Below are positions 6,387 through 46,639 of a stretch of 64,000 bases of DNA, one piece after another; position 1 is the stretch's first letter; every line of letters starts with the position of its first letter. Made by a program: the position numbers and the translations under genes. Origin of the DNA: Paraphysomonas bandaiensis (taxonomy: Eukaryota; Protista; Chrysophyceae); assembly GCA_965644295.1 (NCBI GenBank), contig CBFFRP010000423.1, positions 186,001 through 250,000 of the forward strand, in the 5' to 3' direction. The notes under the pieces were generated by a model. It was not told where the DNA came from, searched no databases, and saw only the letters and a list, made by a program, of their open reading frames with translations.

Positions 6387-6525
6387 TATCGTATGCATCT
6401 TATCGGAAATAAATTGAAGCAAATATTTTCTATATTACTGCAATACAACTACGGCTGAAATACAGCTAATTGTTGTCTCAATATTAGAGGCATCTTGGTA
6501 CAAAAATATACACAGGATGCTGATA
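6387..6525 (+). repeat. ~147-bp promoter-proximal dispersed element, copy 1
   Basis: Shares TCGGAAATAAATTGAAGCAAA..AACTACGGCTG..CTCAATATTAGAGGCATC..AAAATATACA..GATGC with four other copies; lies between divergent starts at 6024 and 6671. Confidence 0.9.
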
Positions 6526-6670
6526 CGGTATATGCACAGTGTGTCTATGTATATGTCCTGTATATGTACATTGTGGTAGGCATATATATATGTAGCGTTG
6601 TATGCATATATATATACAGAGTTGTGGATATGCATTTACATGCTATATACACTACATCAAATCATAAAAC

Positions 6671-8333
6671 ATGGAAGAATTATTAGATGTTGTAATATGT
6701 GATCCATTAGAATTTGATGGAAGATATTTTAATTGTTGGCTTAATGGTATTAAACCAGAAGATGCTGTATCAACAATTATACGTGATATCTATCATTCAA
6801 ATGACAAGAATGGATATGATCTGACATCATGCTATCAATCTGGTGTATTTGAACTTCTTAAATTAGAAATTATGGATTATTATAGAAGTTATGAAATATT
6901 AGATCATTATATATGTCGTCCATCATTATTATCTAGTCAAATGATTATACAAATACCAGATACAACTATAAGATGGATTATAGAAAAATATTATTGTTTA
7001 GATGATCGTGCTGTACGAGAAATGCTTGGAAAAAGATTTTCAAAAAATCGTAAAGATTTAGATGAAATTGCTGAGAGTTTTCATTTACCCATAGCGTCAG
7101 TAACACGACAATATGAAAACATAAAGCGTATATACTCTGCGATAGAAGAGTCAAGACAATTCCAGTGCAATATTCTAAACTTTGTTGAAACCCATTTTGC
7201 GCTACCTCTTCCTTTGGCTAGAAAGTATACATGTGTGCTCTTTTTAATGGCATGTAGATTCTCTGCCACATCAAAGAAGCGCTTTCAGACTATATCCTGT
7301 CTCCAACTTGAGTGTTGTGCGGCTGTCACCATGGCTTGCCTGATTCCTGAGGTTTCAGCATTTTTGTTACATTGGACTGGACCAACAAGCACCGAAGATA
7401 TGGATCCAGGAGATTCGATAGGAGTGAACGGTCATTCTGAGTGGGCTGCAGCGGCTCCAGAGAGTAGTGGTGCAACTTCTTCGTCTCCATGGCCGGGGAT
7501 ATGGCGACTTGTGGGAGAGGTATTAATACCAAAACACAAAGATGAGAACATGTAGTGACATGTACATTTAGGTGGATGCAATTGAACCTGACAAACAGGT
7601 GCGTGGAAGAGGTGTTGTTAAAATGTAGTGACGTTTTGCATGCTCTGCACCTCTGTATGATATTATCCTGTTCATGTCAATATACATGATACATATGGGC
7701 ATGATATGTAATATATTCTACAAGTTTCTAAATATTTATGTATTCGAAACATACAGCTGTTAGGGGTTTTACGAGAGGTCATGTCCTTGGTTAAAGGTGA
7801 GGTCCTCGAACGGGCAGTGCAGTCTGTTCGAAAAGGACTACATAGTTCGCAGAAAAGGTCTGCAATCGTGAGTAAAATGGGGTCCAATGGAAGGTAAGCA
7901 CTTCTAGCTTGTACCATGCATTGATAACGTTGGTTATAGAATAAAAGTGGTTTTGAAGACTTTGGTGAGTATTGGCGGTCACCTTTCGCAGTCGAGGGAA
8001 TATAGGGATCTGTTCGAAGACATTGCCCATAAGGTATGTTTTTAAGACGTCTGATCTGCACTGAGAAAATATAATGTTCAGATTGGAGAGCCGTTGGAGG
8101 AAGCCCGATTAACTCGTGAAGAATCGAATGTGTTTTTGATACATTGCAGTACCATTATAACTGGGACCAAGGACCTAATCATGAGAAGGTTAGGCGCTGG
8201 TCGTGAGAGCACCGGCAGTGGTGGTGGTTCGGCTTTCAGTAGAGCTACAACAGAACGAAAGATCTCAGTGATGGATAATGAATGGCTACGATTTGTCACG
8301 TGCTGTAGATTTTGCCTTTGGAACTTGTATTAG
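6671..8333 (+). CDS. FIBP: Acidic FGF intracellular binding protein homolog; multi-exon
   Basis: WLNG..MDYYRSYEILDHY..IEKYYCLDDRAVREMLGKRFSKNRKDLDEIAE..TRQYENIKRIY parallels FIBP ([43 protein letters not shown]). Confidence 0.85.
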
Positions 8334-9501
8334 CACCCTGAAATGTGTACATCTTGTTGTAAAATAATTAAGCACATATATGGAGGTCATGCATAACAGT
8401 GTCTTCTTGAATTGTATGAAATTAAACATCGAGGTGACTTAAGAAATCATAAAACTGTTTGGAATTGTTTTCGTTTTGAAAATCGCGCTGTTGGCAAGCA
8501 ACGTTCTATGATATATTTTGAGAAAGAAGAAAAGTGATTGCAAAGAAATATGCATCGACGTTTTATTTAGTAATTCGAAACCTGAAAAAGCATATTCTGC
8601 TTTTAAACTTGGTAAACTATAGAGACTAGAGACAAACTCTGTGCACTTGAAGATCACCCTTTAACATTTAAGTCGTGCTCAAATTTCTATACGATAGAGC
8701 ATTATGACGTTTATTCATTCAGTAATCTTATGCCATTCTAAACGTGAACGATAAATGAATACTTTATCAAAAAAAAACTGAACAATCCGATGTCACACTT
8801 CCAAACGCCTCCGCCGCTAACGATACCTTTCGTGCAAAACAGTAATTTATTAACATATATCAACATTTTTAAATTATATTAGGATGTCAGAAAGCACACC
8901 AGCCATAAACTACTTGGGAATAGTGCATCAGAATGTTCAAAGCGGACGAGAGAGTTCAAGATACTAATCATGCTATAGACATGCTATGCCTTTTTAGACG
9001 GGGATATATATACCCATGATAATCCAGTTATAATTATGTTGGATAGGCACTTGCATGGCACTTATATATCCAGAAGAATGCAAACTCAACAGCAGTCAGT
9101 ATATGCATTTTCACAGTATTATTGAGACAAACAGGCCGATACACTCTCTTTTTGTTGTATTGATGATTGATGGTGGATGGAGTTTTTCCCTGTACTTTCC
9201 CATCCCTTTAATTTCTAATGTTTATCTTCCATTAAAAACAGGTATTTTGAGGGAAATTTGAAGGGATTTGGGAAATGGGATTGAAGAAATGGGATATTTT
9301 ATGAATATTTGGAGTATGTCAGTGAAGTAAATCAGGCGTATGTCTTGGTATGGTATAGAAATCTACGTAGAAATCAAGTGGTTAATTCCATCAGATCCCT
9401 TCTAGTTCTTCTATTAAAACAATCACAATAGAATAAGCATCATAACTTAATGAATTCATTTATAATAATCATAATTTTATTATAGATATATAAACATTAT
9501 C

Positions 9502-11714
9502 ATGAAATATTATTCACCCACAAAAATCAATCCATCATCTTCTATATCAACATCTATATTACTGAAACCACAATCCTCATCAACTCCTCATTCTACAGTG
9601 ATTATGGATGATATCATGAATATGGATATTAATTATTGGACTTTAACGTTTTATAATCATCATATACAACAAAAATATGAAAGATTTCTATTAAATAAAA
9701 CATCTATATATGGATTAGGGTGTCTACTGATGATACTCTTCATTCTATATAGTTACTTATTAATTGATACTGTGATTAGACAATCAACAATGTTTTATTC
9801 AGCAAGAATATTACGTTTATTATCAGTATTTTCTGGTATGATTGTATTAATGTTTTTATTGAAAATTATTTCTCTACGAAACATGTATATTACACCATTA
9901 TTAACTGGGAATGTGATGTTGATTTTACATACTATGGGATGTGCATTGGATTTATATATGAGAGCACGTGGTATGCGTAGCTGTGAAAATGATAACTCTA
10001 CTGATTGTAACCCCGAGGCAGAAACGCACAGACTTCCTCAAGACACTCTCATGGTATTGATTGTTAGCATCCTTGTTCTCCAAGTAATTGTTCGATGTCA
10101 TTCGTGGATGGTAGTATTGGCTAGTTGGGTAGTGTCAGAAGGCATTGTTATAGCTTGTATGTTTAAATTTGACTGTATCGCATCGGCTCCAGCCGCCTTC
10201 CTCGGTCTAGTTCTTCTGATTGTGTTGTATGATCATGAGAAACAGGCAATCACATCTTTTTCTTCTCGTCTACGGAGCGAGTTTAATTCAGCCACTACTC
10301 TTGAACAGGAGAGTGAGCGGAAAGCATTGGAGCTCCAAGCAATTGACTTACGACAGCTAATTGGGAATGTTGCACATGATCTAAAAACACCTATGCAAGC
10401 GTTTGCACTGGAGCTATCCAATTTGAAATCGAATCTCATCAACGTTCTCCGTGGTTCACAGGAGATGGATGACTCTATTCGGGAAGTTCTTAGGGACATA
10501 CAAGTATCTTCTGATACTCTAGAAGGAACAAATGAGTTTATGCTGATGACTGTTAGTCGTGCCATCGATTTCACGAAGACTAGTGCCGGTATATCTCTCA
10601 AACCTAACTGCGAGACTGTTCCCGTGGAGCAAACGGTACGGTGGGCTATTAACTGTGTGAACCGCATGCAGAGTACTGTCCCGATAGTGTTTCACCCTAT
10701 TCCCTCGAATATGTGTTCCCATATAATAACAGACAAGCTGTGGCTGATTGAAAATACTCTCTGCTTGGTTTCTAATGCCGTGAAATACTCTACAGAGGGG
10801 AGAGTTGATGTGACGTGCTCACTCGGGTGGGGAGAGAAGACACTAGATGTGGTTTCCCCAGAAGAGGCAGATGTTACGGTATGTGAGCGCTCAGCGATGG
10901 TACGTATTGAGGTACAGGACAGCGGGATAGGCGTCCCTATTGAGCAACGAGCGAGGTTGTTCAAGCCCTTTAAACAAGCTCAGCGGCTCACGGGTGGTAC
11001 CGGACTTGGATTGTATTCGCTATACAAAAGAGTTGAAGCAATTGGTGGTGCTTGCGGACTTTCTTCTCGTAGCGACCACTCCAGCGGAAGTGTATTTTGG
11101 TTCGAGTTCCCGTATGTGTCTGACGCAATGACAGCTAATGCTGACGGAGAAACGAGGCGCCTTGCTCGAGAGGATACTGCCCAACGATGGGTTGAGGACG
11201 GCGACTGTATGCTGGAGGTCGAGTCATACAGTGGATCATTTAAGGAGTCATCCCCTCCAGTTCCGAGGAAACCTGTTGTTCTTTTGGTCGAGGATTCTAT
11301 TCTTATACAGAAAACCACGACTAGGGCACTGGCCAAAGTCGGGTGTGAAGTAGAAGTTGTTGGAAATGGACAATATGGTCTCGAGGCTATGAAGAAGAAG
11401 CGATACGACTTTGTATTGATGGACCTTCAAAGTGAGTGTATGAGTATATATATATATGCGTTGTGTAATTCGTTTTGCCTGTAGTGCCTGTAATGGATGG
11501 CATTGAAGCGGTTAGACGTTTGCGTATGTACGAACGCGAGACTAACGTCTCATCGGAAGACGCCGCTTTGGTGTATGGCATATCCGCAAATTCCGACTCT
11601 GAAACCGAGACTAGTGCACTGATGGTGGGAATGGATGGGTTTCTTGCAAAGCCATTCTCCGTTGATGCTTTTCTCAAGGCATTCCATATGCATCGTAACA
11701 TGGCGACTGTGTGA
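9502..11714 (+). CDS. Membrane-bound hybrid histidine kinase (multi-TM, HisKA, HATPase, receiver)
   Basis: H-box VAHDLKTP, N-box SNAVKYS, G1 QDSGIG, F LFKPF, G2 GGTGLGL; receiver LLVED..LMDLQ/MPVMDG..GMDGFLAKPF, joined across a 53-nt intron at 11432-11484. Confidence 0.93.
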
Positions 11715-12280
11715 AAGTCTATATTTTTTCAGTCGACCGACTTTTTCTCTCGATATTGCTAAGTCGTATGCCAGATATCTCTGCGCAGTACAGAACAGTT
11801 GGTATACAAGTTCCTGTACATATTGAAAATAAGAGTTATGTATGTGATATTATGCAGCGGTACTGCTGTGCAGGTACCGTATCAATTAGTCCTACAGAGT
11901 AGGAGTTTAGCACAGCTGTTTCTTTTTATACAAAATTATATTCATGGACATCCTGGAGTGTATGTGTCCCTTCGAGTGTGCGTCGATTGTACTGTGTAGT
12001 GCAAACACGAATCCAATATCAATGCCATATTGTTATGCATGTGTACGAACCTTAGATGCTTTCTTGCTTCCGATATCGAAGTAGGTGTGCTGTTAGTATT
12101 GTAAATAAAAGAAGTTTTTTTATTAGTTACAAGAATATACTGGCCTTTAAAAGTCTGTGAATCAAGCGTTCCAAGTGTATCCGAATCAAGCACCAGTGGG
12201 ATATCGTAGCTAGCTTGAACCATGTGACGGAGGGCCGGTACAGATTGATACTAGTCTACTGAGTAGCTATACATTAGGTG

Positions 12281-12590
12281 CAGGGCTGCGCATCAATTAA
12301 TCGACGTAGGTTGTAGTCAATTATAATTGCAATTATTAATTGCTGTTTCAATTTCATTGCAATTGCAATTAATATAGATTAACTGTCATGTCCAGGGACC
12401 TCTAGGCAGGTATATCTAATGTCTAAGTGCTTTGAGAAAATCAGTGGTAACAATCTTAGCTGTACTCTGTATCGAGCTTGTTTGTGAAAAAGTGCTCGCT
12501 TCCGCTGCCTGTTATCATCAATCAAGCGCTTCGCTGCTTTGAGATCCTGAGTTGATCCTCACTGTGAAAAAATAGTTGTTAAATTTCTAA
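12281..12590 (-). mobile_element. hAT transposon relic, second copy of the 3300-3729 family
   Basis: Starts CAGGGCTGCGCATCAATTAAT; is the reverse complement of 3631-3729, and also matches the AKIV-coding segment. Confidence 0.7.
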
Positions 12591-12826
12591 TCGCGGGTAA
12601 CACCTTGTAGTTTCACGGCTGTTAAGAATAATAGCAACATCGTAGCTCAGATAAGGCTCGACAATCGGGTGCCTTGTTCTGATGAATTCGTCAAACAATG
12701 TACAAACACTTTGAAATTTTCTTGAATATTTTAATAATAAGAACCACTAAAAATAGTATATTATAATATTCATATTAATCAGGAGTGGAAGTAGTGGTGA
12801 GTCTCTTTTTATTAACAATAAGCGTG

Positions 12827-13672
12827 TAAGTGTCAGAACTATTGTAGCATTATTGCAATGTATGTAGTGCTTAACCTCTGATATCCTACTATTTAACGCT
12901 ACGAAAGCTGCTTGTGCGTCACAGCAAGCGCCATGGTGCACCCACTTTTGCTCTATATCACTCAAAGCAAACGCAGTGAGCAAGCCGAACATTTGTATAT
13001 ATACCTAACATCTGCTGACTTCAGGACTTTTGAGTCCTCAAGGTGAACAGACCGAATGCTTGACTTCAGCGCAGGCAGCCCAAAACACCGGTTACCCTTC
13101 CGGTGGGCCCAAGAGGACGTCTACACCCTCAACAAAGTCGGAATCGCACCTTTTCGTGGTGTTCTGGGGGATAAGGGATAAGTACCGGAGATATTTCTCT
13201 GGGAAACTAACATGAGCGGCATATGTAGTCAGCAGATATACTCATATTATAGCCAAATGATTGTGTGATACAAAGGACACAAAAATAAGTTTCACTTGTG
13301 TAGACGTCTTTGGGCCGTGGCATCCGGGAATGGGCCCACCTCAAGGGAAACCGGGGTATTGGGCTGCCTACTGAAGTCAAGCATCCGGGATGTTTACCTT
13401 AAAAGGACAGAGAGCGGAAGTGGTCGCGCCATGGTGCTTGCTTTGACGCACAAGCAACTTTCGTAGTACCAAATAGTAGGATATCAGAGTTAAGCACTAA
13501 CTAGTTCGGTAAATTGCAATGCTACATTATTTCTGACACTTACCAGTGTCCCTTCTACTACACAAGCATTTGGCTATGAGTATATCTGCTGACTATATAT
13601 ATTATGTCGCTCATTTTAGTTTCTTATTCCCCAGATCACCACAAAAAGGTGCGATTCCGACTCTGTTGAGGG
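12827..13672. mobile_element. Composite non-autonomous element: long-TIR unit 13126-13672 abutting an inverted copy of its own interior (12827-13126)
   Basis: 13126-13281 is the reverse complement of 13545-13672; 12827-12947 of 13418-13542; 13039-13126 of 13298-13401. A further partial copy lies at 52821-53118. Confidence 0.75.
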
Positions 13673-14335
13673 ATCAGGAGTGAAATGCTTGTTACGGTTT
13701 GTCATTACATGTTATGGGACAGACCTACTTTTGAATCAAGTATATTTTTGCTCACATTTGATAGCAAGCTCAAATAAACTTCAAACCTATGCGACATACC
13801 TCAGGTGATGCATCCATACACCCAGCAATTGCAAAGTAGGAGACCTACTATTACCAAAGTAGCTGACTACAGTCTCTGTAAGAAGGTAATAATTTGACGG
13901 ATCCACTACATAAAATTGATATACTGATGTTGAATTTGTGCTAACTTTTATTCTGATTTCATAGTAGAGCTTGGTTATTGCGTTTAGCTACTACTGTGTG
14001 AACAGTCTCAATGCAGAGAACGCACCAATCTAATAGTTGATGTAATGAATATTATTGTTCCTGCGTTGTTTGCGCACATAAAGTTTCAATAACCATGTAA
14101 TAATAATGATTAGATGATGTTATCCTATTAAACATCGTACACACTTAGTCAACATCGTCAGTGTTGAACTCAACAATCAGGTTACACTTTCTCAAACATT
14201 CAGAGCAGAGATCAGGGCTATCATCAATAGTTTTTCTCATACTATCAATGGGAAAAACGACACTCGGACATATACGTTGTGTAAATATCCACGAAAGGCT
14301 CAAAACTCGGCTACACAAATACAACTCTAATAAAC

Positions 14336-18471: not shown

Positions 18472-20249
18472 CTACAGAAGTGCGCGAAGCTGACTCTTAG
18501 GAATAGCAGGCCTATCATGCTCTCTACCTTTGGGTACCTTGTAGAAGTCCCCAGTATCCTCGACAATACGGTCATACCACTGTTGCTGATACGGCAGACT
18601 GTTGGTCTCACACCCACACACAGGCACATGAGGAGCAGGAGTTGTCACATATCCATCACGGAATTTTACGAACAGTTTCCCAAAAAATGTAAACCAGTCC
18701 TTTAGAAGTTCTTGTCCTAGGTTTTCTGAAAATGATGTCATCATCTCGATGGCTTCGTCGACTCTACCCGACTGGATCACATCAACAACTTTAGCATCCA
18801 TCTCTTCAACTAGAGCGAAGTAAGTATTCTCTTTAGCAATAATCTCACTGTAAACATCAGCATAGATAGCATCCCATCGCGAGTATGCAAAGTTCGAAAC
18901 AAGATTGAAGACGTAAAATGCACTATCCAAAGAGAACTCCATCATGGGTGGGGTAACACCATCTTGCGGCCCCTTACCGGCCCATCCAGGCGCAATCCGA
19001 GTGACAGATCCATAAACAGGGAAATGCACAGAAGTTGAAGAATCATCAATCCCGTACCACATCAAGGCGGCCATCTGTCTAGGAACACCAGGCCGGGACT
19101 GACACACAATGTTCCACCCCGTCGGAGGTTGAGCAATAGTGCGCTCATTGAAATATTTGTTTCCGGGGTACGAGGGGGTTGTCCACGTGACAGGCGAGAG
19201 TCTATTGGGATATGAAAATGCACCAGCTCCAACATCCGAGAAGAGCTTTCCTGTGGTGTCCAGTGCAGTGCCTTCATAGTGATTACGCATACTCTGCATT
19301 ACATCAGCAACGCTGAGTGGTTTGGAGGGTTTAACCCACAATGGCATGCGGTTGGTCAAGTTGTATCCTTGTGCGTAGTCCAGGTACTGATTACTCCATT
19401 CCTCTCCCATGACTGTGGAGAAAAATGACCACACTCTCGCCTACACGCACAAGGTCAAGTTGATAGTTGAAAAGTATGTTAAATTACCTCACAAAACCTT
19501 GCCCCCGAAAATGTCACGGGGTCATATATGTCGGAGAATGAGAAATCTTTATCTTCACCCGTATAAAGTCCAATACTTCGGGCAAACGATATAACATCCG
19601 AACTATATATGCAATTCTCAGGATCATCAAGTGGAAAAGTTGTGATACGTGCTTGATTAGCATGACCAGTAACATAACCATCTGGTACTTTACGGGCTAC
19701 CCATACAGCCCCCTTTTCATATCTTCCCTTTCCTATTAGTTCCATATACCATAATTCATTTTGATCTGCAATAGAAAAACTTTCACCAGTAGAAGCATAT
19801 CCATATTCAGATACTAGTTTAGTCATAGTACTAATAGCTTCACGTGCATTACGTGATCTTTGTAATGTTATATATATTAAGGAACCATAGTCTATACGAC
19901 CCTCATTATGTGTACATGTTAATTCTATTAATCCACCAAATGTACTCTCTGTAATGATTAGACCATATTCATTTACATTCCCTACAACGTTATATGTAAC
20001 CTCTGCTTCAGGTATTTCACCTAAGTATGTACCATAATCCCATGTCCATATCTTACGCATTGTATCATTTGAATGTATGGATGCTGGGTAATGATAGATA
20101 GTTGTATAGAAATTAGCAGCATCAGCATTATATGCGATAGTGTTAGAGTGGTCTGTTGTAATGGACTTAGTATATAGGAGGTTAGTACATGCGTGTATAG
20201 AGTAAGAGAGTGTGAATAGAATGTATGTAGAAAAGAAGTGAAAGTACAT
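18472..20249 (-). CDS. Peptidase family C69 (dipeptidase A/secernin-like Ntn hydrolase) with signal peptide; 2 exons
   Basis: MYFHFFSTYILFTLSYSIHA/CTN places the Cys nucleophile right after the signal peptide; motifs VNEYGLIITESTFGG, GYASTGESFSIAD, HANQARI, ARFCE, MRNHYEGT, NERTIA. Confidence 0.9.
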
Positions 20250-20318
20250 TGTAGAGAAGATGAAGTGAGGTGAAGTGAGAAACTGGAGGAGATGAAGTGA
20301 TATAGAGGAGAAATGAAT

Positions 20319-20319
20319 G

Positions 20320-20351
<32 letters not shown>

Positions 20352-20665
20352 TGTATGTATGTATGTATGTATGTATGTATGTATGTATGTATGTATGTAT
20401 GTATGTATGTATGTATGTATGTATGTATGTATGTATGTATGTATGTATGTATGTATGTATGTATGTATGTATGTATGTATGTATGTATGTATGTATGTAT
20501 GTATGTATGTATGTATGTATGTATGTATGTATGTATGTATGTATGTATGTATGTATGTATGTATGTATGTATGTATGTATGTATGTATGTATGTATGTAT
20601 GTATGTATGTATGTATGTATGTATGTATGTATGTATGTATGTATGTATGTATGTATGTATGTATG
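20319..20665. repeat. (TATG)n microsatellite, ~345 bp, essentially perfect
   Basis: Directly visible; produces the spurious HTYI/MYVC ORFs. Confidence 0.98.
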
Positions 20666-21057
20666 CACTGCTCTGTGCACTCTCTATACGTGTACAAACT
20701 GTCATGTGTGGATGTACGTATGAAGTGGTGTGGTAGTGTGTGCGTACTCATAGTGGTATTTGTATGGTATGGTGGCCATATATGGCTCATGGTTATCACA
20801 TATGTCCAGACACTATCCTCTCACTGCACCTCTTCATATTTACCCACCTAAATACCTTCTATTACCACTCCTTATCACCACAAATAGAGGAGATTACACT
20901 GCTATTATTTATATATATAGAATGCACTGTATACAGTCACTAGATATATAGATGCATAGTAACACACACACACACACATACATACATACATATATCTATC
21001 TATCTAGTCAACTAATTTTATCATATTACTAATAATTTAATCTCATATATATATACG

Positions 21058-24429: not shown

Positions 24430-24602
24430 TTGGATCTTATAATGACAAGTACTAAAACTGGAAACTTCGGATGTGTTTACTTACTGATTAGTCGCACTAA
24501 TTTATTGCAATAGTATTGTAGGGCCGGTTTAAAAACTCCATCAATACTATTGATGGAACGCTATCTAACAATAGTATTGCAATATATATTTCCCTATCCC
24601 TG
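24430..24602 (-). mobile_element. One-ended hAT-type element fragment
   Basis: Reverse complement of 40545-40745; terminus related to the TIR of the 36399-36472 MITE. Confidence 0.7.
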
Positions 24603-24919: not shown

Positions 24920-26110
24920 TTAAGGAAAAACGAAAGATTTGTCTTTCTTACGTGGCCCTCCGATAGTGAAGTCAACAACTCCTGTCATTCTAGGTGTTTC
25001 ATTTACATTTTTTCTGGGACTAGTGGCCTCAGGTTCACGTAAACTTCCATTACTATAGCGCCGAATATGATGTTCTACCAATTTTGGTGGGGGAACACAA
25101 TCTTCATTGACCACTCCACAAGACTCTTGTACTATATCCATACTATCCTACACAATTTGTCACTCAAAAAGAAAATTTCGGTGTAAAACTACCTCCTCCA
25201 AACTTGACACTTCCATTAGAGGTTCAAGTGTGGAACTTCCAGAAAAACTGTCCGTGGTAAATGAAATATCCGAAAGACAGTCAACATGTGCACCTGCTCC
25301 GACATCAGTTGTAGCCACAGGAGAACTAATAAATAACGTCCGGTGAGCGGTATCACATCCGTGCTTTGGACTAATCATCGCATCTAGTGACCGTATAGTT
25401 GGCAGGCGGGTGTCGCTTAACGTATTCTTCCTTCTAGATGAAGAGTTCCTTTTCTGGATAGGACTACATGCTTTTGGTGAGAGTGAAACTTTGCTATTTA
25501 AGCACACTTCTGATTGCTTTTCCACATTTTCGAGCATACCACCACAACCGAAGTGACTTTCTCTTGTGACCATTCGTTTCGTTGTATCTACACTGTGAAT
25601 TTCCGTGGCAGGGAGATCACATATATACCCAGTATAATGCTCTCGCGACCCATGTGTATCTGATACAGAAGTGATCTTCGTATTAACGAAACTGTCTAAC
25701 TTCTGGATATCAATTCTTCGTGAGATAGCAGAGGCAGATAGACATTCTAGAAAGTAGTCAAACGTAATATCCGCATCATTCTCTTTCATATTGAATATCA
25801 GGAATACATCGTTTCTACAACATACAATTCCTGAATGAAGGAATAATTCAATAATTGATTTAAATTTAATTGTTTTCATTGAATAATTATGCATAATAAA
25901 CCACTTATAATACTGATATATCTGTATGTCTGTAAATATCATATGATCATATCTATGTGATATATGATATGAATGAGATGAGATCGTAGTGTTTAATGAG
26001 GGTAAAGATATGGGTGATATATGATTAGATTGTATGGATGATATCGAGTTAGATGGTTGATTTATTAGTTGAGATGATGTGTTTATGGATAGGCTCCTTA
26101 AGGGATACAT
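24920..26110 (-). CDS. Uncharacterised protein, possibly with a degenerate EF-hand; probably 2 exons
   Basis: 316-aa ORF plus a downstream exon; segment MKENDADITFDYFLECL resembles an EF-hand exit helix. Confidence 0.55.
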
Positions 26111-26258
26111 AAGGAGCCTAGTGGGGGGTAGAAGGAGTAATGGGGGATTGGAGATAAGGTAGAAGAGAAAGGGTAAGATGTTTCATATGTAATATGGTGA
26201 TGGGAGGTATTGTGAGGGGTTATGTATATGTATATGTGTATGTATCTTATGGTGATGA

Positions 26259-26405
26259 TATCGGCAGTCATCATCGTAGTTTTCGGAAATATAATGAAGC
26301 AAATTTTCTCTATATTACTGAAATAAAACTACGGCTGGTATACAGATAATTATTATCTCAATATTAGAGGCATCTTTGAACAAAAATATACAAAGGATGC
26401 CGATA
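26259..26405 (+). repeat. ~147-bp promoter-proximal dispersed element, copy 2 (intact 8-bp terminal inverted repeat)
   Basis: TATCGGCA...TGCCGATA ends; 147 bp; lies between divergent starts at 26110 and 27012. Confidence 0.9.
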
Positions 26406-26639
26406 CAATATTACAGCAGAGTGTACAGAGTGCATATGTGTGCACATGTATCTGTAGTAGTATATATACTGCTGTACACAGTCTCTATAAATTCACCAAT
26501 TTTCCCTTGCAGTTATATAAAATCAGAGTTTTTATATCTTCTATATAAAAATACCTCGATTTTTATGCAGTACTGCACACAGTCTCCACTATATTTGTGA
26601 CCGCACATTTTAGTATAGTATAATCAGTGGAGTGATATG

Positions 26640-31415: not shown

Positions 31416-32732
31416 CCAATTTTCTTCGGTTTTCAATAGATGCTAAAAGTGAATCCGTAACAAACTCTTGTAAAAATGTGGTGGTGTTTCTGTGATATAT
31501 ATACATCATCGTTTTGAAAGCTAACTTCTACAAACTCTTTCGCCAATTGTATCATACTGCTGATTCTGATAACCTTTCGTCTATATCCATATTTAGATTT
31601 TTATTGAATATAATGAATCCAAGCTAAAAATAATGTATAAGGTGCGAGCTGCTCTGCATTGTTGGTTGTAGCAGCTGTAGAGGGCCGGCTAATTTATGAT
31701 CGGCAATTGCACTTAATTTGGCACCATGGGCGCGTGTGTTGCATGGAGTATGAAGTATGGCAAAGAGTTTTGTGAAGAATGAACAATTACCTAACACAGG
31801 AACCTAGATTTCAATTTTAATTGTTTAACTCCACATGTAGATTGTTTTTACGTCATTCACTATGGTATGGGAAGGATAAACTTGCGTTGGAACTTGATCG
31901 CCCTTTTAGTTCGTCAGTGCAAGCCATGTCACATATCACTGGCAGCGTTATGTAGAACAATTGATGTATCCGTGGCAATGTCTCTTGGAGAATCCCCCTC
32001 AATAACCCTTATTATCTATGTGAATTATATTGCACTTGAAATGATTTTTATTCTATAAATAATTACGGAAGATTATTTGGCTATAGTGGAGTTTTTCAAA
32101 ATATATTAGTGAAGGTGATCTACGAATAACATCTCTACGACCTTTTAATTTCACATCTGAACTTGGTATAACTCATGGACATCAGAGACTCTGTGCTCGA
32201 GGCCTCTAGTGAGGGCACCTGTCTTGCCTCCAGGTGTCCCTTTTTGCAACCCATCTAACCTAATCACTGTATGGGTCGAGTTTGTCATGTAATGGGATCA
32301 ATGAAGCACGTACAGATGCTGCAATATCTGAAGAGGTTATCTCGTGTTAATGCGCAGTGTCTGAGCTGACTGCTGCTGTCCATTTATTGGCCACATATGC
32401 ATTAGAATGCTCTTTATGCATATAAAAGATATGCTATTGAGCAGAAATGATAGTTGAGTTAACAGATAGAGTGATATTAACAAAAGAATAGTATAGATAT
32501 GCAGTATATATATGACTGGGAAGGTATAGAGGTGCAGTGGAGGTCGCTTGTCCTCTGTATGATATAGTTGAGTGATCGCTCGCTGATTAGTTTCATGCTA
32601 TTTTTATGTGTTTTCAATGCAATTTACGAAAAATACCGAGATTTTTAATGAATTTTAGATTTTTTATGGGGTTTTTATATACTGTGTTTGCATCGCGTAT
32701 TATAGAGCACACGAGGAGTTCAAAGATGCCCA

Positions 32733-32880
32733 TATCGGCAGTCAGCACCTTATTTTTTCGGGAATAAATTGAAGCAAAACTCGTTGATATTACTGCAATA
32801 CAACTACGGCTGGAATACACATAATTGTGGCCTCAATACTAGAGGCATCTTTGAACGAAAATATACAAAGGATGCCCGTA
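32733..32880 (+). repeat. ~147-bp promoter-proximal dispersed element, copy 3
   Basis: Same consensus; 234 bp upstream of ATG 33114; preceded by an inverted fragment of its own 3' end (GTTCAAAGATGCC, 32718-32730). Confidence 0.9.
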
Positions 32881-33113
32881 TACGGGCAACGGGCCGTATA
32901 ATACAGAGAGTGTACATATCCCACACTTTCAACTGCTGTATTCTCCTGTATACATATGTATATATTACGGTTACTAAGCCTGTCGATCTCTCTCTCTACG
33001 TATAGAAACACTTGCACAGCCCACTCATTAAACATACATACATAATCTCACATATCTACCTCTATAAATATAGTAACATGATCATTTAATTGATCACAAG
33101 TAAACTACTCATT

Positions 33114-36398: not shown

Positions 36399-36472
36399 CA
36401 GGGCTAGGAAACAATATATTGCAATACTATTGTACAATGTATTGCAATTCAATATATTGTTTCCTAGCCCTG
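36399..36472. mobile_element. 74-bp hAT MITE with perfect TIRs and an 8-bp target-site duplication
   Basis: TIR CAGGGCTAGGAAACAATATATTG / CAATATATTGTTTCCTAGCCCTG flanked by CTACATAA at 36391-36398 and 36473-36480. Confidence 0.93.
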
Positions 36473-38302: not shown

Positions 38303-38838
38303 TGTATTGTATTGTATTGTATTGTTGTTTAAGGTGCTTTAAGTGTCTGTATATATATACATATATATGGATGGGATCGCTCATTTGAATCCACTTAAAA
38401 TCACCTGCCCTCTAATTACTGAAAAAGGATAAATTCCATGTTTTCTTCATCGAAACCATGGATATTTAGATATTTAGAGTTTTGGTTGGATGTAATATTC
38501 TTTTATCACATACAGAGTATACAGTACGTACTGCTACATTGGACAAAAAATCTGAAGGTTTGTTTTTCCAAGTCAACTTTTCAAAACATAAAAATCATGG
38601 TTTTCTATATTGAGGTTATGAATATTTTCTTCTCCTGTCCAAACTGCATTGTCATCTACACTTCAAGTTTATGTGTCATCCACATACATATACATACACA
38701 TACACATACATACATGTACATATACATACAGTACATACACACATACACACACAGAACTAGACACATTAACACCCACATATATATACATAATCACTTCAAT
38801 CTAATTCATTATAATAATAAACAAAATATTTTATACTC

Positions 38839-40173
38839 ATGTATGCTCCTTTTCCTAAAAACTTTAATAGTGAAGAACAATTACTACGTACATTCTGGCG
38901 TCGATGGTTCTCTGAAAGTATCCCTCTATTAGATAATAAAACTCCTGTAGAAGCATCTAAAACAAATGAAGGAAGAAAAAAAATAGAAGAATTATTAGAA
39001 TTTTATAATAATTCAAATAATAGAGAAGGTGGAATGAAATTATGTGGTAAATTTACTGCAAATCCTCCTGTGAATTGGGTACGATGGAAATTAGGGATGA
39101 TTGAAGGTGATGCTTCACAATTTGAGGAAGAAGAAAGAATTTATAATGATAAAGCCAGTATTGAACGTGCAGAACAATCGAATCAACCACAGAAAGCTGT
39201 AGAAAGTGGTATTAAATGTAATATGTGTGATAAGGAGGGCACACTACGATGCAGCAGATGCAAGTCCAGGAGGTACTGTACTGTTAAATGTCAAAAATTA
39301 GATTGGCCGGCACACAAGAAGTATTGTGTAAAGGTCGCAGAGCAAACTGCATTGTCGGATGAGGAGTGGAAAAAGGACTTCGAGACTAAGACTGCACAAG
39401 AGGTGTATTGCAAGTTGCACGAATCTGTCTGTAAGATGGCCCAAAACTCTGAAGATGGACCCAAACCTACCTGGAAACAATTTGTGCAGACATGTGTAAA
39501 GAAGGGTTATCCCTTCCCTGACTATCACAGGAGACCTCAGGACGTGCCGGAGGAGGAGCTGACCTTTCTCAAGGATAGCGGGGTGCATGAGAAGTTGTGG
39601 AAGTTGTACTTTAAGCTCACTGAGGCTGTGGTAGCGGCTCATGTTCATGGCAAGAAGAAGTACAAGGAAGAAGAACGGAAGCGCATACATAAAGAACGAA
39701 AAGCCACCCGTGCTGCGCTAGAGTCCTTTACGACCATTGACACCACAGTGCTACGCGACCTGCCTTCCCTGCCGGTGTACTTATCGGTGTCCTGGAGCTG
39801 TATGATGCTTAACAAAGCTACTGGACAGAAGGAATGCTGTGTTATGGCAATATGGATACATGATGGCATCAAAAATGAGAAGATCGCATATATGCATGCC
39901 CCCGTTCTCTGTGATGTGAAGCCTCCATTAGATGAACTTAGGCGTGCTTTATTCGTCAGCATGACTGCACCCGGTGGAATTCCCCCCGGAATCCCAACCA
40001 GGTATCGTCCCAGAGAAATTCAAATATCAAATAGATGGGGAGATGATTACTATGAGGCCGTGGCTGGACCTCTCTCGGATGTGGGTATTCTTGTGACGTT
40101 TCAATCCCGAGCGGACCTGGAACGAGAATGTCGACGGGAAGGAACTGACCCAGATGGCAATAACTTTTTATAA
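38839..40173 (+). CDS. MYND zinc-finger protein with an N-terminal MbcA/ParS/Xre antitoxin-like domain; intronless
   Basis: CNMC..CSRC...YC...CQKLDWPAHKKYC is a zf-MYND; WFSESIPLLDNKTPVEASKTNEGRKKIEELL resembles the DUF2384 pattern. Confidence 0.85.
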   Translation: MYAPFPKNFNSEEQLLRTFWRRWFSESIPLLDNKTPVEASKTNEGRKKIEELLEFYNNSNNREGGMKLCGKFTANPPVNWVRWKLGMIEGDASQFEEEERIYNDKASIERAEQSNQPQKAVESGIKCNMCDKEGTLRCSRCKSRRYCTVKCQKLDWPAHKKYCVKVAEQTALSDEEWKKDFETKTAQEVYCKLHESVCKMAQNSEDGPKPTWKQFVQTCVKKGYPFPDYHRRPQDVPEEELTFLKDSGVHEKLWKLYFKLTEAVVAAHVHGKKKYKEEERKRIHKERKATRAALESFTTIDTTVLRDLPSLPVYLSVSWSCMMLNKATGQKECCVMAIWIHDGIKNEKIAYMHAPVLCDVKPPLDELRRALFVSMTAPGGIPPGIPTRYRPREIQISNRWGDDYYEAVAGPLSDVGILVTFQSRADLERECRREGTDPDGNNFL

Positions 40174-40268
40174 ATTAATATTCAGTTGCGAACGATTTAA
40201 GTTTAAAAATGCATTTAAGTTTAGTCACTTGTACTGTTGCCCGTCTTTTAATAATTCAACACATCTAT

Positions 40269-41961
40269 AGAAATTTCTTTCTGGACAAAAAGTACTTCAG
40301 AAAGAAAACATCAAAAATCAATATGTAATTGTATGCAGTCTAAATTCACCAGAAAGAACTTCAGTCAGGTAACGTGTAGTAAGTTCTTCCTAGTGAGTTT
40401 AGACCGCATACACGTATTACATTTACATATTGATTTTTGATGTTTTTTCTGAAGTACTTTTTATCCAGATTTATTTCTTTAACTAGGCCGCGGCGCTCGA
40501 ACGCAGTCAGTTTATCATAGTTGACATGACCGAGCCTTTTGTGCCAGGGATAGGGAACAATATATTGCAATACTATTGTTAGATAGCGTTCCATCAATAG
40601 TATTGATGGAGATTTTAAACAGGCCAAACAATACAATTACAATATATTGCAATATATTGTCAATGTATTGCAATATATTAGTATGACTAATCAGTAGGTA
40701 AGCACATCCGTAGATTTCATTTTTAGTATTAGTCATTAAGATCACATGACAACCAAACCAACTGCTGCTTATAGCTACTAAAAATCCACCTCGTCCTCAT
40801 ACTCTGAGCCATCATCGGTGACGTCAACAGAACCATATTCATCCACAGAATTAATTGAAATATGCTAGTATCCGGCCATAACTGTCGAATAGCTTTCAGA
40901 AACAACAGCATATTAAGTAGGATGGATACTTTTGCGCAACACTGATATAATATGTTTAGCTGTGCTGAACAGACGTTCCCATGTATGGGAAGTACATACC
41001 AGGGCCAGGCAATCTAGAGTCTCGCCCCCGTTTAGAACTGACAACTGCAGCTTTAGCAGTCTTCAAGCGGAAGCAGTCTTTAGTCTGATGGCCTGGGATG
41101 TCACATATCTCACTCACAGGTAGCTTAGTTTTGTTATCACCCCTATTTCTGTTATCTCTATCTTTTTTCTGTGATCTTGTCCCCTTCATCCTCTTTATAA
41201 CATGTTCTGGAGTCTTGCACTCCCTAGCAAAGTGGCCAAGTTTCTTGCACTTATTGCATCTGCCCTTTCTCTTGTGCTCTTTCTATTTACTGTCATCCAC
41301 TGCTTGATTGACATTGTCTTTAACGTATGCTTGCCGAATGATGTGTTTTCATGTCCTTTGATTAGGCTGCTTGCTCTCGCGTATGTCACATCGTTTGCTG
41401 TATACAGGCTGTGTGCTAGCTGGGAATATCTCTTGTCTGTGAGACCTTCCTTTAGTCGAGTGAGCTTGTCGTCTTCCGTGACTTCACGACCTAGATTCTC
41501 GAGAACCTTGGCCTGGGCTTCAACGCTGTCGACGAACTCTGCTGCTGACTGACTTGAGGTAATCTTCATTGAATTGAGCTTTGTGACCTCTGCCTGCACT
41601 GCGTTCTTTTCAACATTGATAAATCTCTTTTCCAGTGCCTGTAGTAACCCTTTTGCTGTACTTCCTTCGTAGAGAGCGCCGCTGTTTTGCCTGCCTTTGG
41701 GTGAGCATTCCGGGTGTTCCAGAGTCTCTTCGCGTTGCGTAGTCGCTTCTCCTGTGCATCAGTCATTTGAGCTCCCGCTGGAACTGTAGAGTCTAGGTCA
41801 TGAATGTGCCTTGGTTTATTCTTTGAGAGGACAAGATGGGCCCGATTGTGTCTCATGAGGAATGAGGTGAAGAACTTCTTGAATTTCTTGAATTTCAGTT
41901 CCTCGAATGGAGATACCTTAGAGCCTGAGGCGACATTCGTGAAACTACCATCCGCTACCAT
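40269..41961 (-). mobile_element. Degenerate Ty1/Copia retrotransposon fragment (gag, two zinc knuckles, GAG-pre-integrase)
   Basis: SQSAAEFVDSVEAQAKVLENLGREVTEDDKLTRLKEGL (UBN2-type gag), CNKCKKLGHFAREC and CEICDIPGHQTKDC knuckles, WHKRLGHVN; frameshifted. Confidence 0.85.
40545..40745 (+). mobile_element. hAT-type element fragment inserted in the Copia relic
   Basis: Begins CAGGGATAGGGAACAATATATTGCAATACTATTG, like the 36399 MITE; inverted homolog at 24430-24602. Confidence 0.7.
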
Positions 41962-42384
41962 ATTAACTTAAGCTTTTAAGAGTGCAGTATTGACTGATTG
42001 ATATTAGGGAGATATAGTGAAACTATGATGTTGTAGCACTGTGATTTAGGAACCACGTCATTCACCAACATCAACATTCTGTTCTACAATCGTATCTTTA
42101 ACAGCTACTATATTTTCAGTTTCTTTGTATACTTGTAATAGCTACTCCTATAGTGTAGTGTATATTCTGTATTTCATTCCTACATAGAATACAGGATAAC
42201 TACTAGCGATTGGCTTCACCAAACTTCAAGTACGCACGTAGGAGTTTGGTTGTAGTTCAATACGTTGAAATGTAATGTATTGCATGTATACGAATATCTT
42301 CATTCATTAATTGATGGCTAGAGTATGCTCCCATGTTTAAATGAAATTTTTCTACTTTTGACTATAGGTGAATACCATAAACAC

Positions 42385-42512
42385 CTAGTCAACCTAGTCA
42401 TTGTAAATTGAAAATATGAATTATTAAATGACTGTTTTTCAACCGCTTGACTAGTTTTTTTAATACCAATTTTGGTGTGACTAGGAAAAATTACACCAAA
42501 ATTGACTAGATC
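42385..42512 (-). repeat. Fragment of the MITE family seen at 57686-57908
   Basis: CACCAAAATTGACTAG and GTAAATTGAAAATATGAA..AATGAC..TTTTCAACC match the reverse complement of 57686-57782. Confidence 0.6.
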
Positions 42513-43418
42513 CCTATTTAAGATGGCATGCTCCTTGACCCTTGACTATATCGGTATGACTGATTGTGGCACGACCTAAACAAAGAAACTTTATGTGTCT
42601 TACATTTACGCTCGTGGTTCACACAGAATATCGAAATGATGTCGTGGGGTCATGACTGGGAGCATAGTGTCCATGCGTTCCACTTTCAGCGAAGTTCGTC
42701 GTGACAGTACAAACTGCAGGGAGTTTTCAAATTTGAGTTTATGATTTTCTGTGGACATAGAAGTATTACCATGGCGTTAGGGAGCTGGGAATTCCATTTA
42801 GCCAAAAATAAAGCTAAAGCAACGTGATCAAATTTCCACTTAGCACAACGTTATAAGAATAGAATGCCTTTATTAGAGTGAAGCAACATTACTTCCAGTA
42901 CGGCATCCTATGCAATACCTTCGTCCAATAGAATATATCTTGTTGTCAACAGAGATAGCCAGCATGAGTGATTCCTTTTAGTCCATTCTGTTGTTTGTCA
43001 AAGTGTCAAAACAAAGTCTTAAACTTTCTTTTTTCGAGAATAGCGCCATTGATGTTGTGAAAGAATAACGCCTGATGAAGTGGGCGACATGCGAACGCTT
43101 TACTCCCAACGCATGAGGTGGACTACTTATCTTATTTCACGTGGCTTCAGATTCCAGAGCCACTCTACGGAGGTACATTCATGTGAGGAGGTACATATGG
43201 ATTATATCCGCCCACACCTATACAACTATAGTGTGTATAAACGATTGAAGTGATAATAATGGTTCATATATTCTCATTCATTCACAGTTTCAGTTACAAT
43301 ATGAATCCTTCAGTACAGGTAATTCTACAAGGAATGATATCCATATAAATCATATGTAATGATAATATAGTTATATATGTGTGATCCATCCAACAGAGTT
43401 TTCTCTAGATATGATAGC

Positions 43419-43565
43419 TAGAGACATCGTTTGTATATTTTTGTTCCAAGATGCCTCTAATATTGAGACAACAATTATCTGTATTACAGCCGTAGTTGTA
43501 CATCAGTAATATAGACAATATTTGCTTCAATTTATTCCCGAAAAATAAGATGCTGACTGCCGATA
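43419..43565 (-). repeat. ~147-bp promoter-proximal dispersed element, copy 4
   Basis: Reverse-complement copy, 284 bp upstream of the RPL27 ATG. Confidence 0.9.
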
Positions 43566-43848
43566 CGCATGTATGGATATAGCTATATGTACAGTACACT
43601 GTACAGTACGACGTACAGAACGATCGTAGTACACTGTAAGTGTATAAATGAGACAAACCGAGTCTATCCCTAAAAAAAAACTAAAAACCTTTTATAAAAA
43701 CTGAAAAAGTCAAGCTACTCTTAAAGATATCACTATATTATGGTATGGATGAGAAGAATGGTTCGAGAGATGGAGGTATACATACATATATATAACAGCA
43801 ATTGCAATAGCACTTAAATCAAATAATTAGGCATCATTAGTCGATAAG

Positions 43849-44435
43849 ATGGGAATGTAAGCGAATTGTATTAATGATATGTAATATTTAATATTGTTTT
43901 ATTATAGCATTAAGAGTGGAAGAGTTGTTATTGTCCTCGCTGGACGTTATGCCGGTCGTAAGGCAGTTGTTGTGAAGACTCATGAAGATGGTGGGGCTGG
44001 AAAGAGATTCGGTCATGCTGTTGGTATATTTTAATATAATTTTTTATTGTTTTATATAATTTTATTCATTTATAGTCGCTGGCATTGATCGTTATCCCAG
44101 AAAGGTTGTTAAGGCCATGAGCAAGGCTAAGCTTGACAAGAGATCCAAGATCAAGCCCTTTGTTAAGGCTATTAACTTCAACCATATCATGCCTACCAGG
44201 TATAATAAATCTGTTATAATATACTAGATGTCATACTCATGTTGAAATTTAAAGATACGTAACCGACTTCGACCTGAAGAAGATTGTTGATGAGGGTGCC
44301 TTGTCGTCTGAGTCCCGTGTCGAAACTAGAAAGGTCCTGAAGAAGACATTTGAGGAGAAGTACAGAAACCAGTCCGGAAAGAACGAGAAGAAGGCTGGTG
44401 GTACACAGTACTTCTTCAAGAAACTCCGCTTCTAA
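43849..44435 (+). CDS. RPL27: 60S ribosomal protein eL27; exons 43849-43856, 43908-44023, 44076-44199, 44255-44435
   Basis: Spliced product [71 protein letters not shown]. Absent from the ORF track. Confidence 0.97.
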
Positions 44436-44799
44436 ATATCAGTGTTCCCTCTTATGATTTGTCTAATTAATTGACGCATTCCTTTAGCTGTTGCACTGTT
44501 CCTTCCATACTTCAAAGTTTTAGTGAAAAGTATGTGTACTAGCTAGCTGACTGAGTAGTGAACACACTTTATTTGCATAGCGCTTGCTAATTAATTAATT
44601 GCATGCAAAAGTGAATTTTGTCGTGGCTGTATATCTTGATCTCAGAAATGGTCAAATCTCGCCTAGTATAAACAAGGACATCTTTAATTAGGGTGTATAT
44701 GTACTACTTGCCTCGATTGCGGTAGGGTAACTTGTATCTTATTGGCCCCATGGTAGTGAATGTCTTATTATTAGCAATGGTAGGCGTTTAAGAGTCACT

Positions 44800-45095
44800 G
44801 CTTAACAGGGCTTCGTCAGCTCTATTAAAGCTCCAAGTCTAAGACAACACCATAGTGCCTCAGACAGCAACTCCTTGTATCTTCCGCTTGGACCTCTCGC
44901 TACTTTGCAACCTAACCATGTGCTCCGCAAAGCTCCGCGGAGGGCCTAAGGGGCACCCACCCGACTAAAACCGTCTTCAGCCAAGGACTAAAACCGTCTG
45001 AGATACTAACTCAACTATCGGAACGGAAGTAGTCGCACCTTGGTGCTTAAGGCAACGCACAAGCAGCTTTCGTAGCGTTAAATAGTAGGATAATA
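44800..45095 (+). mobile_element. 3' end relic of a related non-LTR retrotransposon (5' boundary approximate)
   Basis: Codes PKGHPPD* at 44945-44968, followed by the shared 3'UTR motif GCACCTTGGTGCT..ACGCACAAGCAG. Confidence 0.6.
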
Positions 45096-45607
45096 GCGTT
45101 TGTACTAGTTAGTTACAGGTTTCAGGTAGACGTCTAACTAGCTTGACTAGCATCCATCTAGCTACTCAGTGGTGTAGATTCTTAACGACTATTGCTAATA
45201 ATAAGACTTTCAATATTATACATCCATTGTGAAAGTTCAGTATTATATATTCACCTAAAATCCCATCGCAAAACGACCAGTTATCTCTCCATCCCTCTAC
45301 ACCACGCACTTGCCAAGAGCGATTATCGCTCAATGACAATATTACCTACACAACAATTAAATCTACTACTGCTACTGTTAAACACATGCGTTTGCCAAAA
45401 GGAAGGAGTACTATGTAATTCAAGTTGCCACAGAAGCAATTTGTTGTGTCTTAACAAATAATTCAATTCTATCTATGTTATCTCATAAGTATCTTGTGCT
45501 TTAACTATCCTATTGCATAAGTAGCCACATTACAACATCTGCTTTCCTAAGAATCATAGTGAAGGAAATATAAAATAATAATGATTACGTTATAAATATA
45601 GCCATCA

Positions 45608-45725
45608 TGCATCATATAGCCATAACCACAACGCAACAATGAAGCCAGCACATGCCACTCACTCCCGGTATGTGCATCATATAGCCATAACCACAACGCA
45701 ACAATGAAGCCAACACATGTCACAC
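45608..45725. repeat. Tandem duplication, 2 x ~65 bp
   Basis: TGCATCATATAGCCATAACCACAACGCAACAATGAAGCCA occurs twice. Confidence 0.85.
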
Positions 45726-45983
45726 ACTATCGCTCTCTTTGTATCCGGAGTTACGAGAGAGAAGACCTGCACCCCAGGCCCGATACCCACTTATACCATT
45801 CAACATCAGTGTGCACAGTGTTGATCAGACACATAAGGAGTGTGAGTTGGCAGCATACGACACACGCAATACACCAGAACACTCGTGACAACTAACCTGA
45901 TTAATATAATTATCTACATGTCATGAATCCACTCTAGATTCTCTCGGTATGCATCAGGTTCGATGAAGGATCATATATACAAG

Positions 45984-46395
45984 CAATGCGGAGTGCGTGA
46001 AATTCTGTTACACTCATGTATACTTTTCAGTTTGTGTCGGTTGTAGATGTGTGTGCCTGTATGGCTGTATGTGTGTGCCTGTATCAAGGCGTGTATATGT
46101 GTATGTATGTGAGGGTGTGTGTAGCTCTATTAACAGTCACCCTCAATACATACAAGAACCTGAATCACTTCAGAGCAGAGATTGAAAGGGACATGACGGT
46201 CAAGTTGATATTCTTATGTTTCTGGTGTAGATATCACCTCATTTCATGGCACTGTTGATAGTGTAAAGTAACATATGAAGAGATGCGTATACCATATATA
46301 CACACTACACAACAGTATACCACGGTATACCAAAAACACATATCTACAACCGACACAAACTGAAATTTATATATGAGTGTGACACTCCCGCATTG
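45984..46395. mobile_element. MITE-like element with ~60-bp imperfect TIRs
   Basis: CAATGCGGAGTG..ACACTCAT..TTCAGTTTGTGTCGGTTGTAGAT is mirrored by ATCTACAACCGACACAAACTGAA..ATGAGTGT..CACTCCCGCATTG. Confidence 0.7.
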
Positions 46396-46493
46396 TATGA
46401 TGATCGACTACTACGTATAAGAGTGTATACAGACTGTATTTTCTGTATACTTTCTTAGTTCTTGGGTGGTTGTCAGATATGGTCATATACCCG

Positions 46494-46639
46494 TACGGTA
46501 GTTAGCATCTTATTTTTCGGAAATAAATTGAAGCAAATATACTCTATATTACTGATATACAACTACGGCTGTAATACACATAATTGTTGTCTCAATATTA
46601 CAGGCATCTTTGAACAAAAATATACAAACCATGCATATA
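46494..46639 (+). repeat. ~147-bp promoter-proximal dispersed element, copy 5
   Basis: Same consensus; 165 bp upstream of the LRR gene ATG. Confidence 0.9.

Follow-up and report, generated by a model that had tools for sequence, protein, structure and literature searches.

The rice element mPing, a Tourist-type MITE (miniature inverted-repeat transposable element) of the PIF/Harbinger superfamily, is 430 bp long and generates a 3-bp TAA/TTA duplication of its target. Its insertions keep out of exons and are enriched in the 1 kb upstream of transcription starts, which a review attributes probably to open chromatin; mPing can also change how inducible its neighboring genes are (PMC4065317). Here we describe an element of similar habits that occurs five times in a 64-kb stretch of genomic DNA from Paraphysomonas bandaiensis (contig CBFFRP010000423.1, positions 186,001 to 250,000). 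The whole of this stretch is called the window, and coordinates are in its own numbering unless a contig or locus is named. Like mPing, the element is small and non-coding, has inverted termini and hundreds of copies, avoids coding sequence and is enriched just upstream of genes. It differs by its length of 151 bp and its variable 2-bp target-site duplication (TSD), and its host is a stramenopile alga rather than a plant.

Gene-5′ placement, random orientation and clustering also liken the element to other transposons. Maize Mutator, the Drosophila P element and, in yeasts, the hAT element Hermes insert preferentially at gene 5′ ends or in nucleosome-free regions, have no orientation preference and show hotspots. 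Their TSDs measure 9 to 11 bp, 8 bp and 8 bp, respectively, whereas that of the present element is 2 bp and its termini are unrelated to theirs. A 2-bp TSD is common to Tc1/mariner, Mirage (CMC group), ISL2EU and the present element; CMC elements start with CAC(T/A), in contrast to the CGTAT found here. Descriptions of transposons in diatoms and related organisms are scarce. For Phaeodactylum tricornutum, the Phatr3 annotation holds 235 MITE copies, reported as the first in a diatom (PMC5859163). A full-text literature search found diatom MITEs only as a bare class listing in that one genome paper, whose passages on them merely list the class, with no anatomy, TSD or gene placement (PMC5859163).

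We consider it probable that the element is a promoter-targeting MITE, a decaying transposon family whose bias toward gene 5′ ends comes from integration preference. A transposase encoded elsewhere would have spread the 151-bp element and would integrate into accessible promoter DNA. The sequence-only reading of the window had described five copies of an element of about 147 bp beside gene starts, and had proposed either a promoter-targeting mobile element or a domesticated one, serving as a portable promoter or nucleosome-positioning module under selection on length.

A family hidden Markov model (HMM), built from 39 aligned copies and scanned against the window at E<0.01, located the copies at 6381-6527 (copy 1, plus strand, with a degenerate 5′ end), 26257-26407 (copy 2, plus strand, 151 bp, flanked by an AT/AT TSD), 32731-32882 (copy 3, plus strand), 43417-43567 (copy 4, minus strand, with a degenerate 3′ terminus) and 46491-46641 (copy 5, plus strand, with both termini degenerate). 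No sixth copy or fragment was found in the 64-kb window at this threshold. An independent repeat finder returned the same five sites, four direct and one inverted, with pairwise matches of 74 to 91%. The five copies resemble one another at about 83 to 91%; the stretches aligned with a mean column identity of 83% over about 150 columns, and similarity dropped abruptly at both ends. The places given in the sequence-only reading were thus confirmed by alignment, repeat finder and HMM, as were its start-codon distances of 146, 149, 234, 284 and 165 bp, which refer to ATGs at 6671, 26110 (minus strand), 33114, 43849 and 46804. With the HMM coordinates, the FIBP ATG lies 144 bp downstream of copy 1, the RPL27 ATG 282 bp from copy 4 and the ATG of an LRR gene 163 bp from copy 5. 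Copy 3 is in a tandem gap, 232 bp 5′ of the ATG of a coiled-coil-like open reading frame (ORF); the last synthetase exon seen ends more than 1.3 kb before it. Two copies had been assigned to bidirectional promoters. Only the site of copy 2 is clearly divergent, between a minus-strand ORF (ATG 26110) and a class I aminoacyl-tRNA synthetase ORF (ATG 27012); that of copy 1 cannot be so classed, the strand of its left-hand ORF being ambiguous.

Placement relative to genes was assessed in a sample of 358 kb. Besides the window it comprised the surroundings of the best BLAST hits, as 30 loci of 3.1 kb, and those of exact 23-mer matches taken in contig order, as 20 ten-kilobase loci. It contains 66 good copies, about 10% of all copies in the genome. 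Coding ORFs were predicted by length and a self-trained codon model. Among the 63 copies with any predicted neighbor, 55 were faced by the 5′ end of the nearest ORF. Where the nearest ORF was within 1 kb, this was true of 50 of 52 copies, compared with 50.4% of control positions (binomial P = 7e-13). The control consisted of all non-ORF positions of the window and the ten-kilobase loci, element-bearing gaps included, which makes it conservative. The 50:2 excess of 5′-facing neighbors upholds, in this wider sample from many contigs, the claim that the element targets promoters and is found beside gene starts.

Where both neighbors were predicted (n = 32), 21 element-bearing gaps were divergent, 10 tandem and one convergent. 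Genome-wide, divergent and convergent gaps are necessarily equal in number, and the median lengths of control gaps were similar (about 750 bp for divergent and 1,000 bp for convergent ones). In tandem gaps, the element was closer to the start of the downstream gene in 9 of 10 cases. Predicted ORFs made up 39% of the sampled DNA, yet none contained a copy. Of the 55 copies faced by an ORF 5′ end, 50 had distances to the ATG between 51 and 863 bp, with a median of 338 bp, and with respect to its neighbor gene the element was oriented at random (28:22). Copies were strongly clustered, with 13 extra ones in 200 kb around 20 focal copies, compared with two or three expected, and eight or nine loci had two or three copies inside 400 bp, some of them 22 to 51 bp apart. 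With five copies in 64 kb, the window has some seven times the genome-wide density, which averages one copy per 94 kb, and this fits the local clustering.

Pfam searches on 20 neighbor ORFs confirmed the strand of 13. In several, including DENND11, a formin GBD domain, eIF3j and an OGFOD2-like protein, domain position showed that the start of the ORF is the N terminus of the protein. The neighbors are unrelated host genes, comprising FIBP, the tRNA synthetase, RPL27, the LRR receptor, DENND11, formin, a mitochondrial carrier, eIF3j, an RsmB-type methyltransferase and others.

The ends of the element were mapped by aligning 40 copies with their flanks, 31 of which had recognizable ends. The modal length was 151 bp (24 of these 31), not the 147 bp or so first estimated. 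Terminal inverted repeats (TIRs) of 10 bp, CGTATCGGCA/TGCCGATACG, are present in the consensus and in most copies, in place of the 8-bp repeats reported earlier for copy 2, in which the first two TIR bases are mutated. The element starts with CGTATCGGCAGTCAG and ends with GGATGCCGATACG. Flanking dinucleotides were identical in 19 of the 31 copies (about 1 in 16 by chance), and three further copies shared 3 bp (ATG, TCA and TAA). The 2-bp duplications are variable, often AT, otherwise TT, TC, CT, AG, TG, GA and others. The non-palindromic cases (TC, CT, AG, TG and GA) indicate a direct target duplication rather than a palindromic target.

The motif GCATC(T/C)TT occurs near the ends of the element, twice in direct and once in inverted orientation; these subterminal motifs are probably candidate transposase-binding sites. 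Two of the three occurrences make up the 3′ stem of the sequence-only reading, and this stem and the core motifs it had pointed out are indeed present, as plain parts of the family consensus. The element is AT-rich, with 34% GC compared with 41% in the window, and carries A/T tracts and TATA-like strings. It contains no ORF. A scan of the whole window found no Rfam family at threshold, so the element is not a known RNA gene. Folded as a single strand, a canonical copy gave terminal pairing and a small 3′ hairpin alone (z = -2.7), and a long fold-back hairpin was accordingly rejected.

Mobility was evident at locus L042 (C41:15070-25069), where three tandem 2.2-kb units, more than 98% identical, occupy positions 2628-8070. 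Unit 1 has a full copy inserted at a site that is uninterrupted in units 2 and 3, and the filled and empty sites differ by 151 bp, a duplicated TT and one extra G. The element has therefore moved, and the empty site identifies its CG termini as part of the element. The nearby ATG is 96 bp away from this insertion and an older copy 51 bp away; in every unit, a 221-aa ORF also has a 5′-truncated copy about 145 bp upstream. The first 30 bases of the insertion contain diagnostic changes that recur exactly on another contig, a match that suggests recent activity of a diverged source copy.

With its TIRs, TSD, small size, lack of coding capacity, many copies and empty site, the family is a MITE, that is, a non-autonomous class II element. 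The inverted termini, the 2-bp TSD in 19 of 31 copies, the L042 empty site and the hundreds of copies bear out the mobile element of the sequence-only reading. Several affiliations were rejected. A TA duplication within a CGTACG target is contradicted by the empty site and by the non-palindromic direct flank matches. Derivation from PIF/Harbinger (Tourist-like MITEs) would entail a 3-bp TWA TSD, whereas the mode is 2 bp and 3-bp matches occurred in 3 of 31 copies. Tc1/mariner (Stowaway-like MITEs) would entail a TA TSD, whereas the dinucleotides are variable and there is no TA at the empty-site junction. As for hAT and Mutator, with TSDs of 8 bp and 9 to 11 bp, a flank match of 4 bp or more was seen in none of the 31 copies.

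The first look by BLAST at the organism's own 62.56-Mb assembly gave 894 candidates, with dozens of full-length copies at 88 to 91% identity on many contigs. Genome-wide, the 3′-end 23-mer had 668 matches with up to two mismatches and the 5′-end 23-mer had 565 with up to three; the reversed control gave 0 in both searches. The copy number is thus roughly 600 to 900. Divergence from the consensus ranged from 6% in the best-hit set to 9% in unselected copies. The most variable sites co-vary as subfamily markers, and no block stands out as better protected. There are fragments of 44, 88, 105 and 126 bp, erosion of the 5′ end is frequent, and a variant of about 137 bp, which lacks the 14-bp loop of the 3′ hairpin, is found with the same junction in three or more places. 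CpG sites had a substitution rate of 0.092 compared with 0.074 elsewhere, and of 54 CpG changes 41 were C>T or G>A. This decay is too weak an indication of methylation for us to draw a claim from it. As a whole, the family behaves as a decaying transposon and not as a conserved host module, though single copies may change the expression of neighboring genes.

The 5′ bias most likely reflects integration preference rather than later loss of other insertions, with open chromatin as the presumed basis of targeting. The hotspots, the random orientation and the promoter-proximal L042 insertion are as integration preference predicts, and not as a selected module predicts. Several points weigh against this reading. 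Targeting is deduced from standing copies, which alone cannot separate integration preference from selective retention. The sample covers about 60 of more than 600 copies, half of them best BLAST hits and half exact 23-mer matches, and a few are non-independent (the tandem units and the ankyrin-gene paralogues described below). The ORF predictor recovered the Pfam-supported genes of the window and missed small-exon genes such as RPL27. Terminus patterns searched without the MITE interior revealed no multi-copy autonomous partner, and there was none in the 358-kb sample. Finally, internal indels numbered 22 against 722 substitutions in a sample biased to intact copies, a low ratio that could hint at a length constraint.

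An alternative that we regard as unlikely is that insertion was near random and was followed by selection, in which copies in coding, 3′ untranslated (UTR) and terminator regions were purged and upstream ones tolerated. The absence of copies from the ORFs is as this would predict, the 6 to 9% divergence from the consensus would have left time for purging, and many intergenic positions are functional in a compact genome. However, convergent gaps, with their median of about 1 kb, offer room beyond the UTRs, and yet only 1 of the 32 element-bearing gaps is convergent. Insertions in promoters are not obviously less harmful than insertions past poly(A) sites. Also against it, several copies are piled up within tens to hundreds of base pairs of each other, and the L042 insertion, absent from two sister units more than 98% identical to its own, is already promoter-proximal.

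It is distinctly unlikely, by our estimate, that a transposase of a poorly known or undescribed superfamily, defined by a 2-bp non-TA TSD and CGTAT termini, acts with near-total specificity for diatom promoters and that, through the same 151-bp AT-rich sequence placed upstream of several hundred genes, a subset of these has been wired into a shared regulatory or chromatin response. In the searches for a transposase source, matches to the 5′-end pattern were MITE indel variants and singletons only. The 3′-end pattern matched MITE variants and also a repeat of unrelated appearance, present in at least 55 identical copies and beginning with CGTATCGACATCC. The identical 30-mer of this repeat, CGTATCGACATCCAGTGATTCAGAAGTAAA, starts as the MITE terminus does, with one mismatch, and occurs in at least 55 places, for example at C423:388942-388971, outside the window. 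Several of its copies lie about 1757 or about 5420 to 5470 bp from the start of a contig, as though the assembly were interrupted by a long, young repeat. The repeat may be a relative of the MITE source, or the likeness of the 13-mer may be a coincidence that copy number has multiplied. The genome has 42 DDE_Tnp_4 (Harbinger-type) matches, and every one is at least 39 kb away from all listed sites of the CGTATCGACATCC repeat.

We think it improbable that all or much of the family was recruited as a cis-regulatory module, either a portable promoter or enhancer or a nucleosome-sized positioning element held at about 147 bp under selection. The very strong association with gene starts, the AT-richness with its A/T tracts and TATA-like strings, and the scarcity of indels relative to substitutions would all suit such a role, and mPing, itself a promoter-seeking MITE, can make its neighbors inducible (PMC4065317). 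The two transcripts whose 5′ ends were mapped argue otherwise. RNA evidence came from contigs assembled from three public runs, in which expression levels and exact transcript starts are approximate. The 5′ end of the RPL27 mRNA, on a contig joined to sequencing adapter, maps to about 43840, some 273 bp beyond copy 4, and the mRNA contig of the LRR gene starts at 46758, about 117 bp beyond copy 5. Thus both 5′ ends lie outside the element, at unequal distances, and the two copies have opposite orientations relative to these transcripts. In both cases the element is upstream of the transcript and supplies neither a start site nor a fixed spacing. Together with the 28:22 orientation and the spacing of 51 to 863 bp to the ATG, this speaks against the domesticated portable promoter of the sequence-only reading. 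Its nucleosome-positioning module with selection on length found no support either in the mode of 151 rather than 147 bp, the truncated copies of 44 to 126 bp and the deletion variant of about 137 bp; on the other side stand the few internal indels, in a sample biased to intact copies. The subfamily-defining sites without a protected block are as several source copies would predict. Also against co-option, several promoters hold two or three copies.

Insertions were compared by all-against-all BLAST of their 600-bp flanks. Sharing was limited to the L042 units, four ankyrin-gene paralogues, neighboring MITEs and one short repeat; apart from the L042 units and the ankyrin paralogues, the insertions are therefore independent. 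Pfam identified ankyrin repeats in 4 of the 20 neighbor ORFs scanned (those of L034, L004, L046 and L029), and the ankyrin-linked ORFs are L034:2-1147, L004:1723-3027, L046:5614-8136, L011:1952-2905 and L029:3-1166. The L011 ORF had no Pfam match. The flanks of L034, L004, L046 and L011 are 82 to 96% identical to one another, which suggests that these four form one paralogous family. The MITE copies in their promoters point in both directions and vary in offset, and the paralogues were hit independently by the element. Passive spread within larger duplicated segments or a gene-carrying element, with the gene-start position inherited, is largely refuted and has a negligible chance of being right: the three truncated L042 copies within the tandem triplication and the four copies upstream of ankyrin paralogues could be so explained, but no other flanks are shared beyond the neighboring MITEs and the one short repeat, the neighbor genes are unrelated, the ankyrin-linked copies differ in orientation and offset, and TSDs differ among copies.

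The promoter-targeting MITE favored here would involve no new kind of biology, its behavior matching that known for mPing. Its 5′ bias is unusually clean. With about 96% of sampled cases upstream of gene starts, the family would be a clean natural case, from a lineage other than plants, animals and fungi, of integration directed to promoters. Several hundred promoters are marked by it, perhaps perturbed by one shared sequence, and it points to a transposase encoded elsewhere. Should that enzyme be found and prove active, it might serve as a promoter-trap or insertional-mutagenesis tool for diatoms. In genome annotation, the family could be tried as a pointer to gene 5′ ends.

The neighbor genes in the window are supported by several kinds of evidence. 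The first exon ORF of the FIBP gene, next to copy 1, spans 6671-7555 on the plus strand and matches PF05427 (E = 1.6e-42). The synthetase ORF near copy 2 has a Pfam tRNA-synt_1 match. The other neighbor of that copy, the ORF at 25160-26110, had been labeled EF-hand-like, a label that fell away as the ORF has no Pfam match at E≤0.01. The coiled-coil-like ORF beside copy 3 (ATG 33114) encodes 529 aa. RPL27, the neighbor of copy 4, occupies 43849-44486 on the plus strand and is represented by spliced, polyadenylated RNA contigs, which give exon bounds of 43856, 43908-44022, 44075-44197 and 44253-44486, with GT..AG joints and poly(A) after 44486. The LRR receptor-like gene beside copy 5 (46804-50956, plus strand) has Pfam LRR matches and a 46-bp intron at 47112-47157. 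The names FIBP and LRR, which rest on Pfam, and RPL27, which rests on its plus-strand RNA contigs, are thus as first given. The Pfam content of the window includes a hybrid histidine kinase, LRR receptors and FIBP, and was taken to point to a diatom-like marine alga as host.

A second RPL27 locus, C58:82930-83607, is 83% identical to window positions 43808-44480. The identity covers the transcribed region only, and the promoter and MITE are unshared. On the other side of copy 4, low-level RNA contigs from three runs cover 42431-43336, about 900 bp with no convincing ORF, and end about 80 bp from the copy; if this transcript runs leftward, copy 4 is in a bidirectional promoter. Window positions 46645-47094, in the 5′ region of the LRR gene, are 85% identical to C125:154694-155140. 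This similarity starts four bases past the modeled end of copy 5 (46641), and the C125 sequence may represent a site, allelic or paralogous, that lacks the element. One RNA run (X3) contained a diverged allele of the LRR gene, with 33 differences between 46729 and 47111.

Other repeats occur in the window. Just upstream of copy 5, positions 45018-45223 belong to a repeat family of about 200 bp with at least 25 copies at 84 to 87% identity, and RNA contigs at 45000-45200 have a very high summed depth. Also upstream of copy 5, positions 45972-46384 belong to a family of about 320 bp with at least 20 copies at 85 to 89% identity, and an inverted 82-bp piece lies beside them; several copies of this family sit in a tandem array of about 1.95 kb on contig C111. 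The region 58104-63923 holds a minus-strand ORF of 1333 aa with a reverse-transcriptase domain (PF00078), beside two directly repeated segments (58104-59666 and 59752-61322) that are 96% identical and recur at a period of about 1.65 kb. This region looks like a retroelement with repeated segments. At 20234-20900 there is a long (TATG)n array, over 600 bp in extent, which overlaps the open frame encoding the N-terminal half of a Peptidase_C69 gene (19479-20705, minus strand). Short dispersed repeats, in direct and inverted pairs at 83 to 91% identity (24499-24602 with 40545-40648, and 12876-13489 with 52878-53084), are probably other small transposon families.

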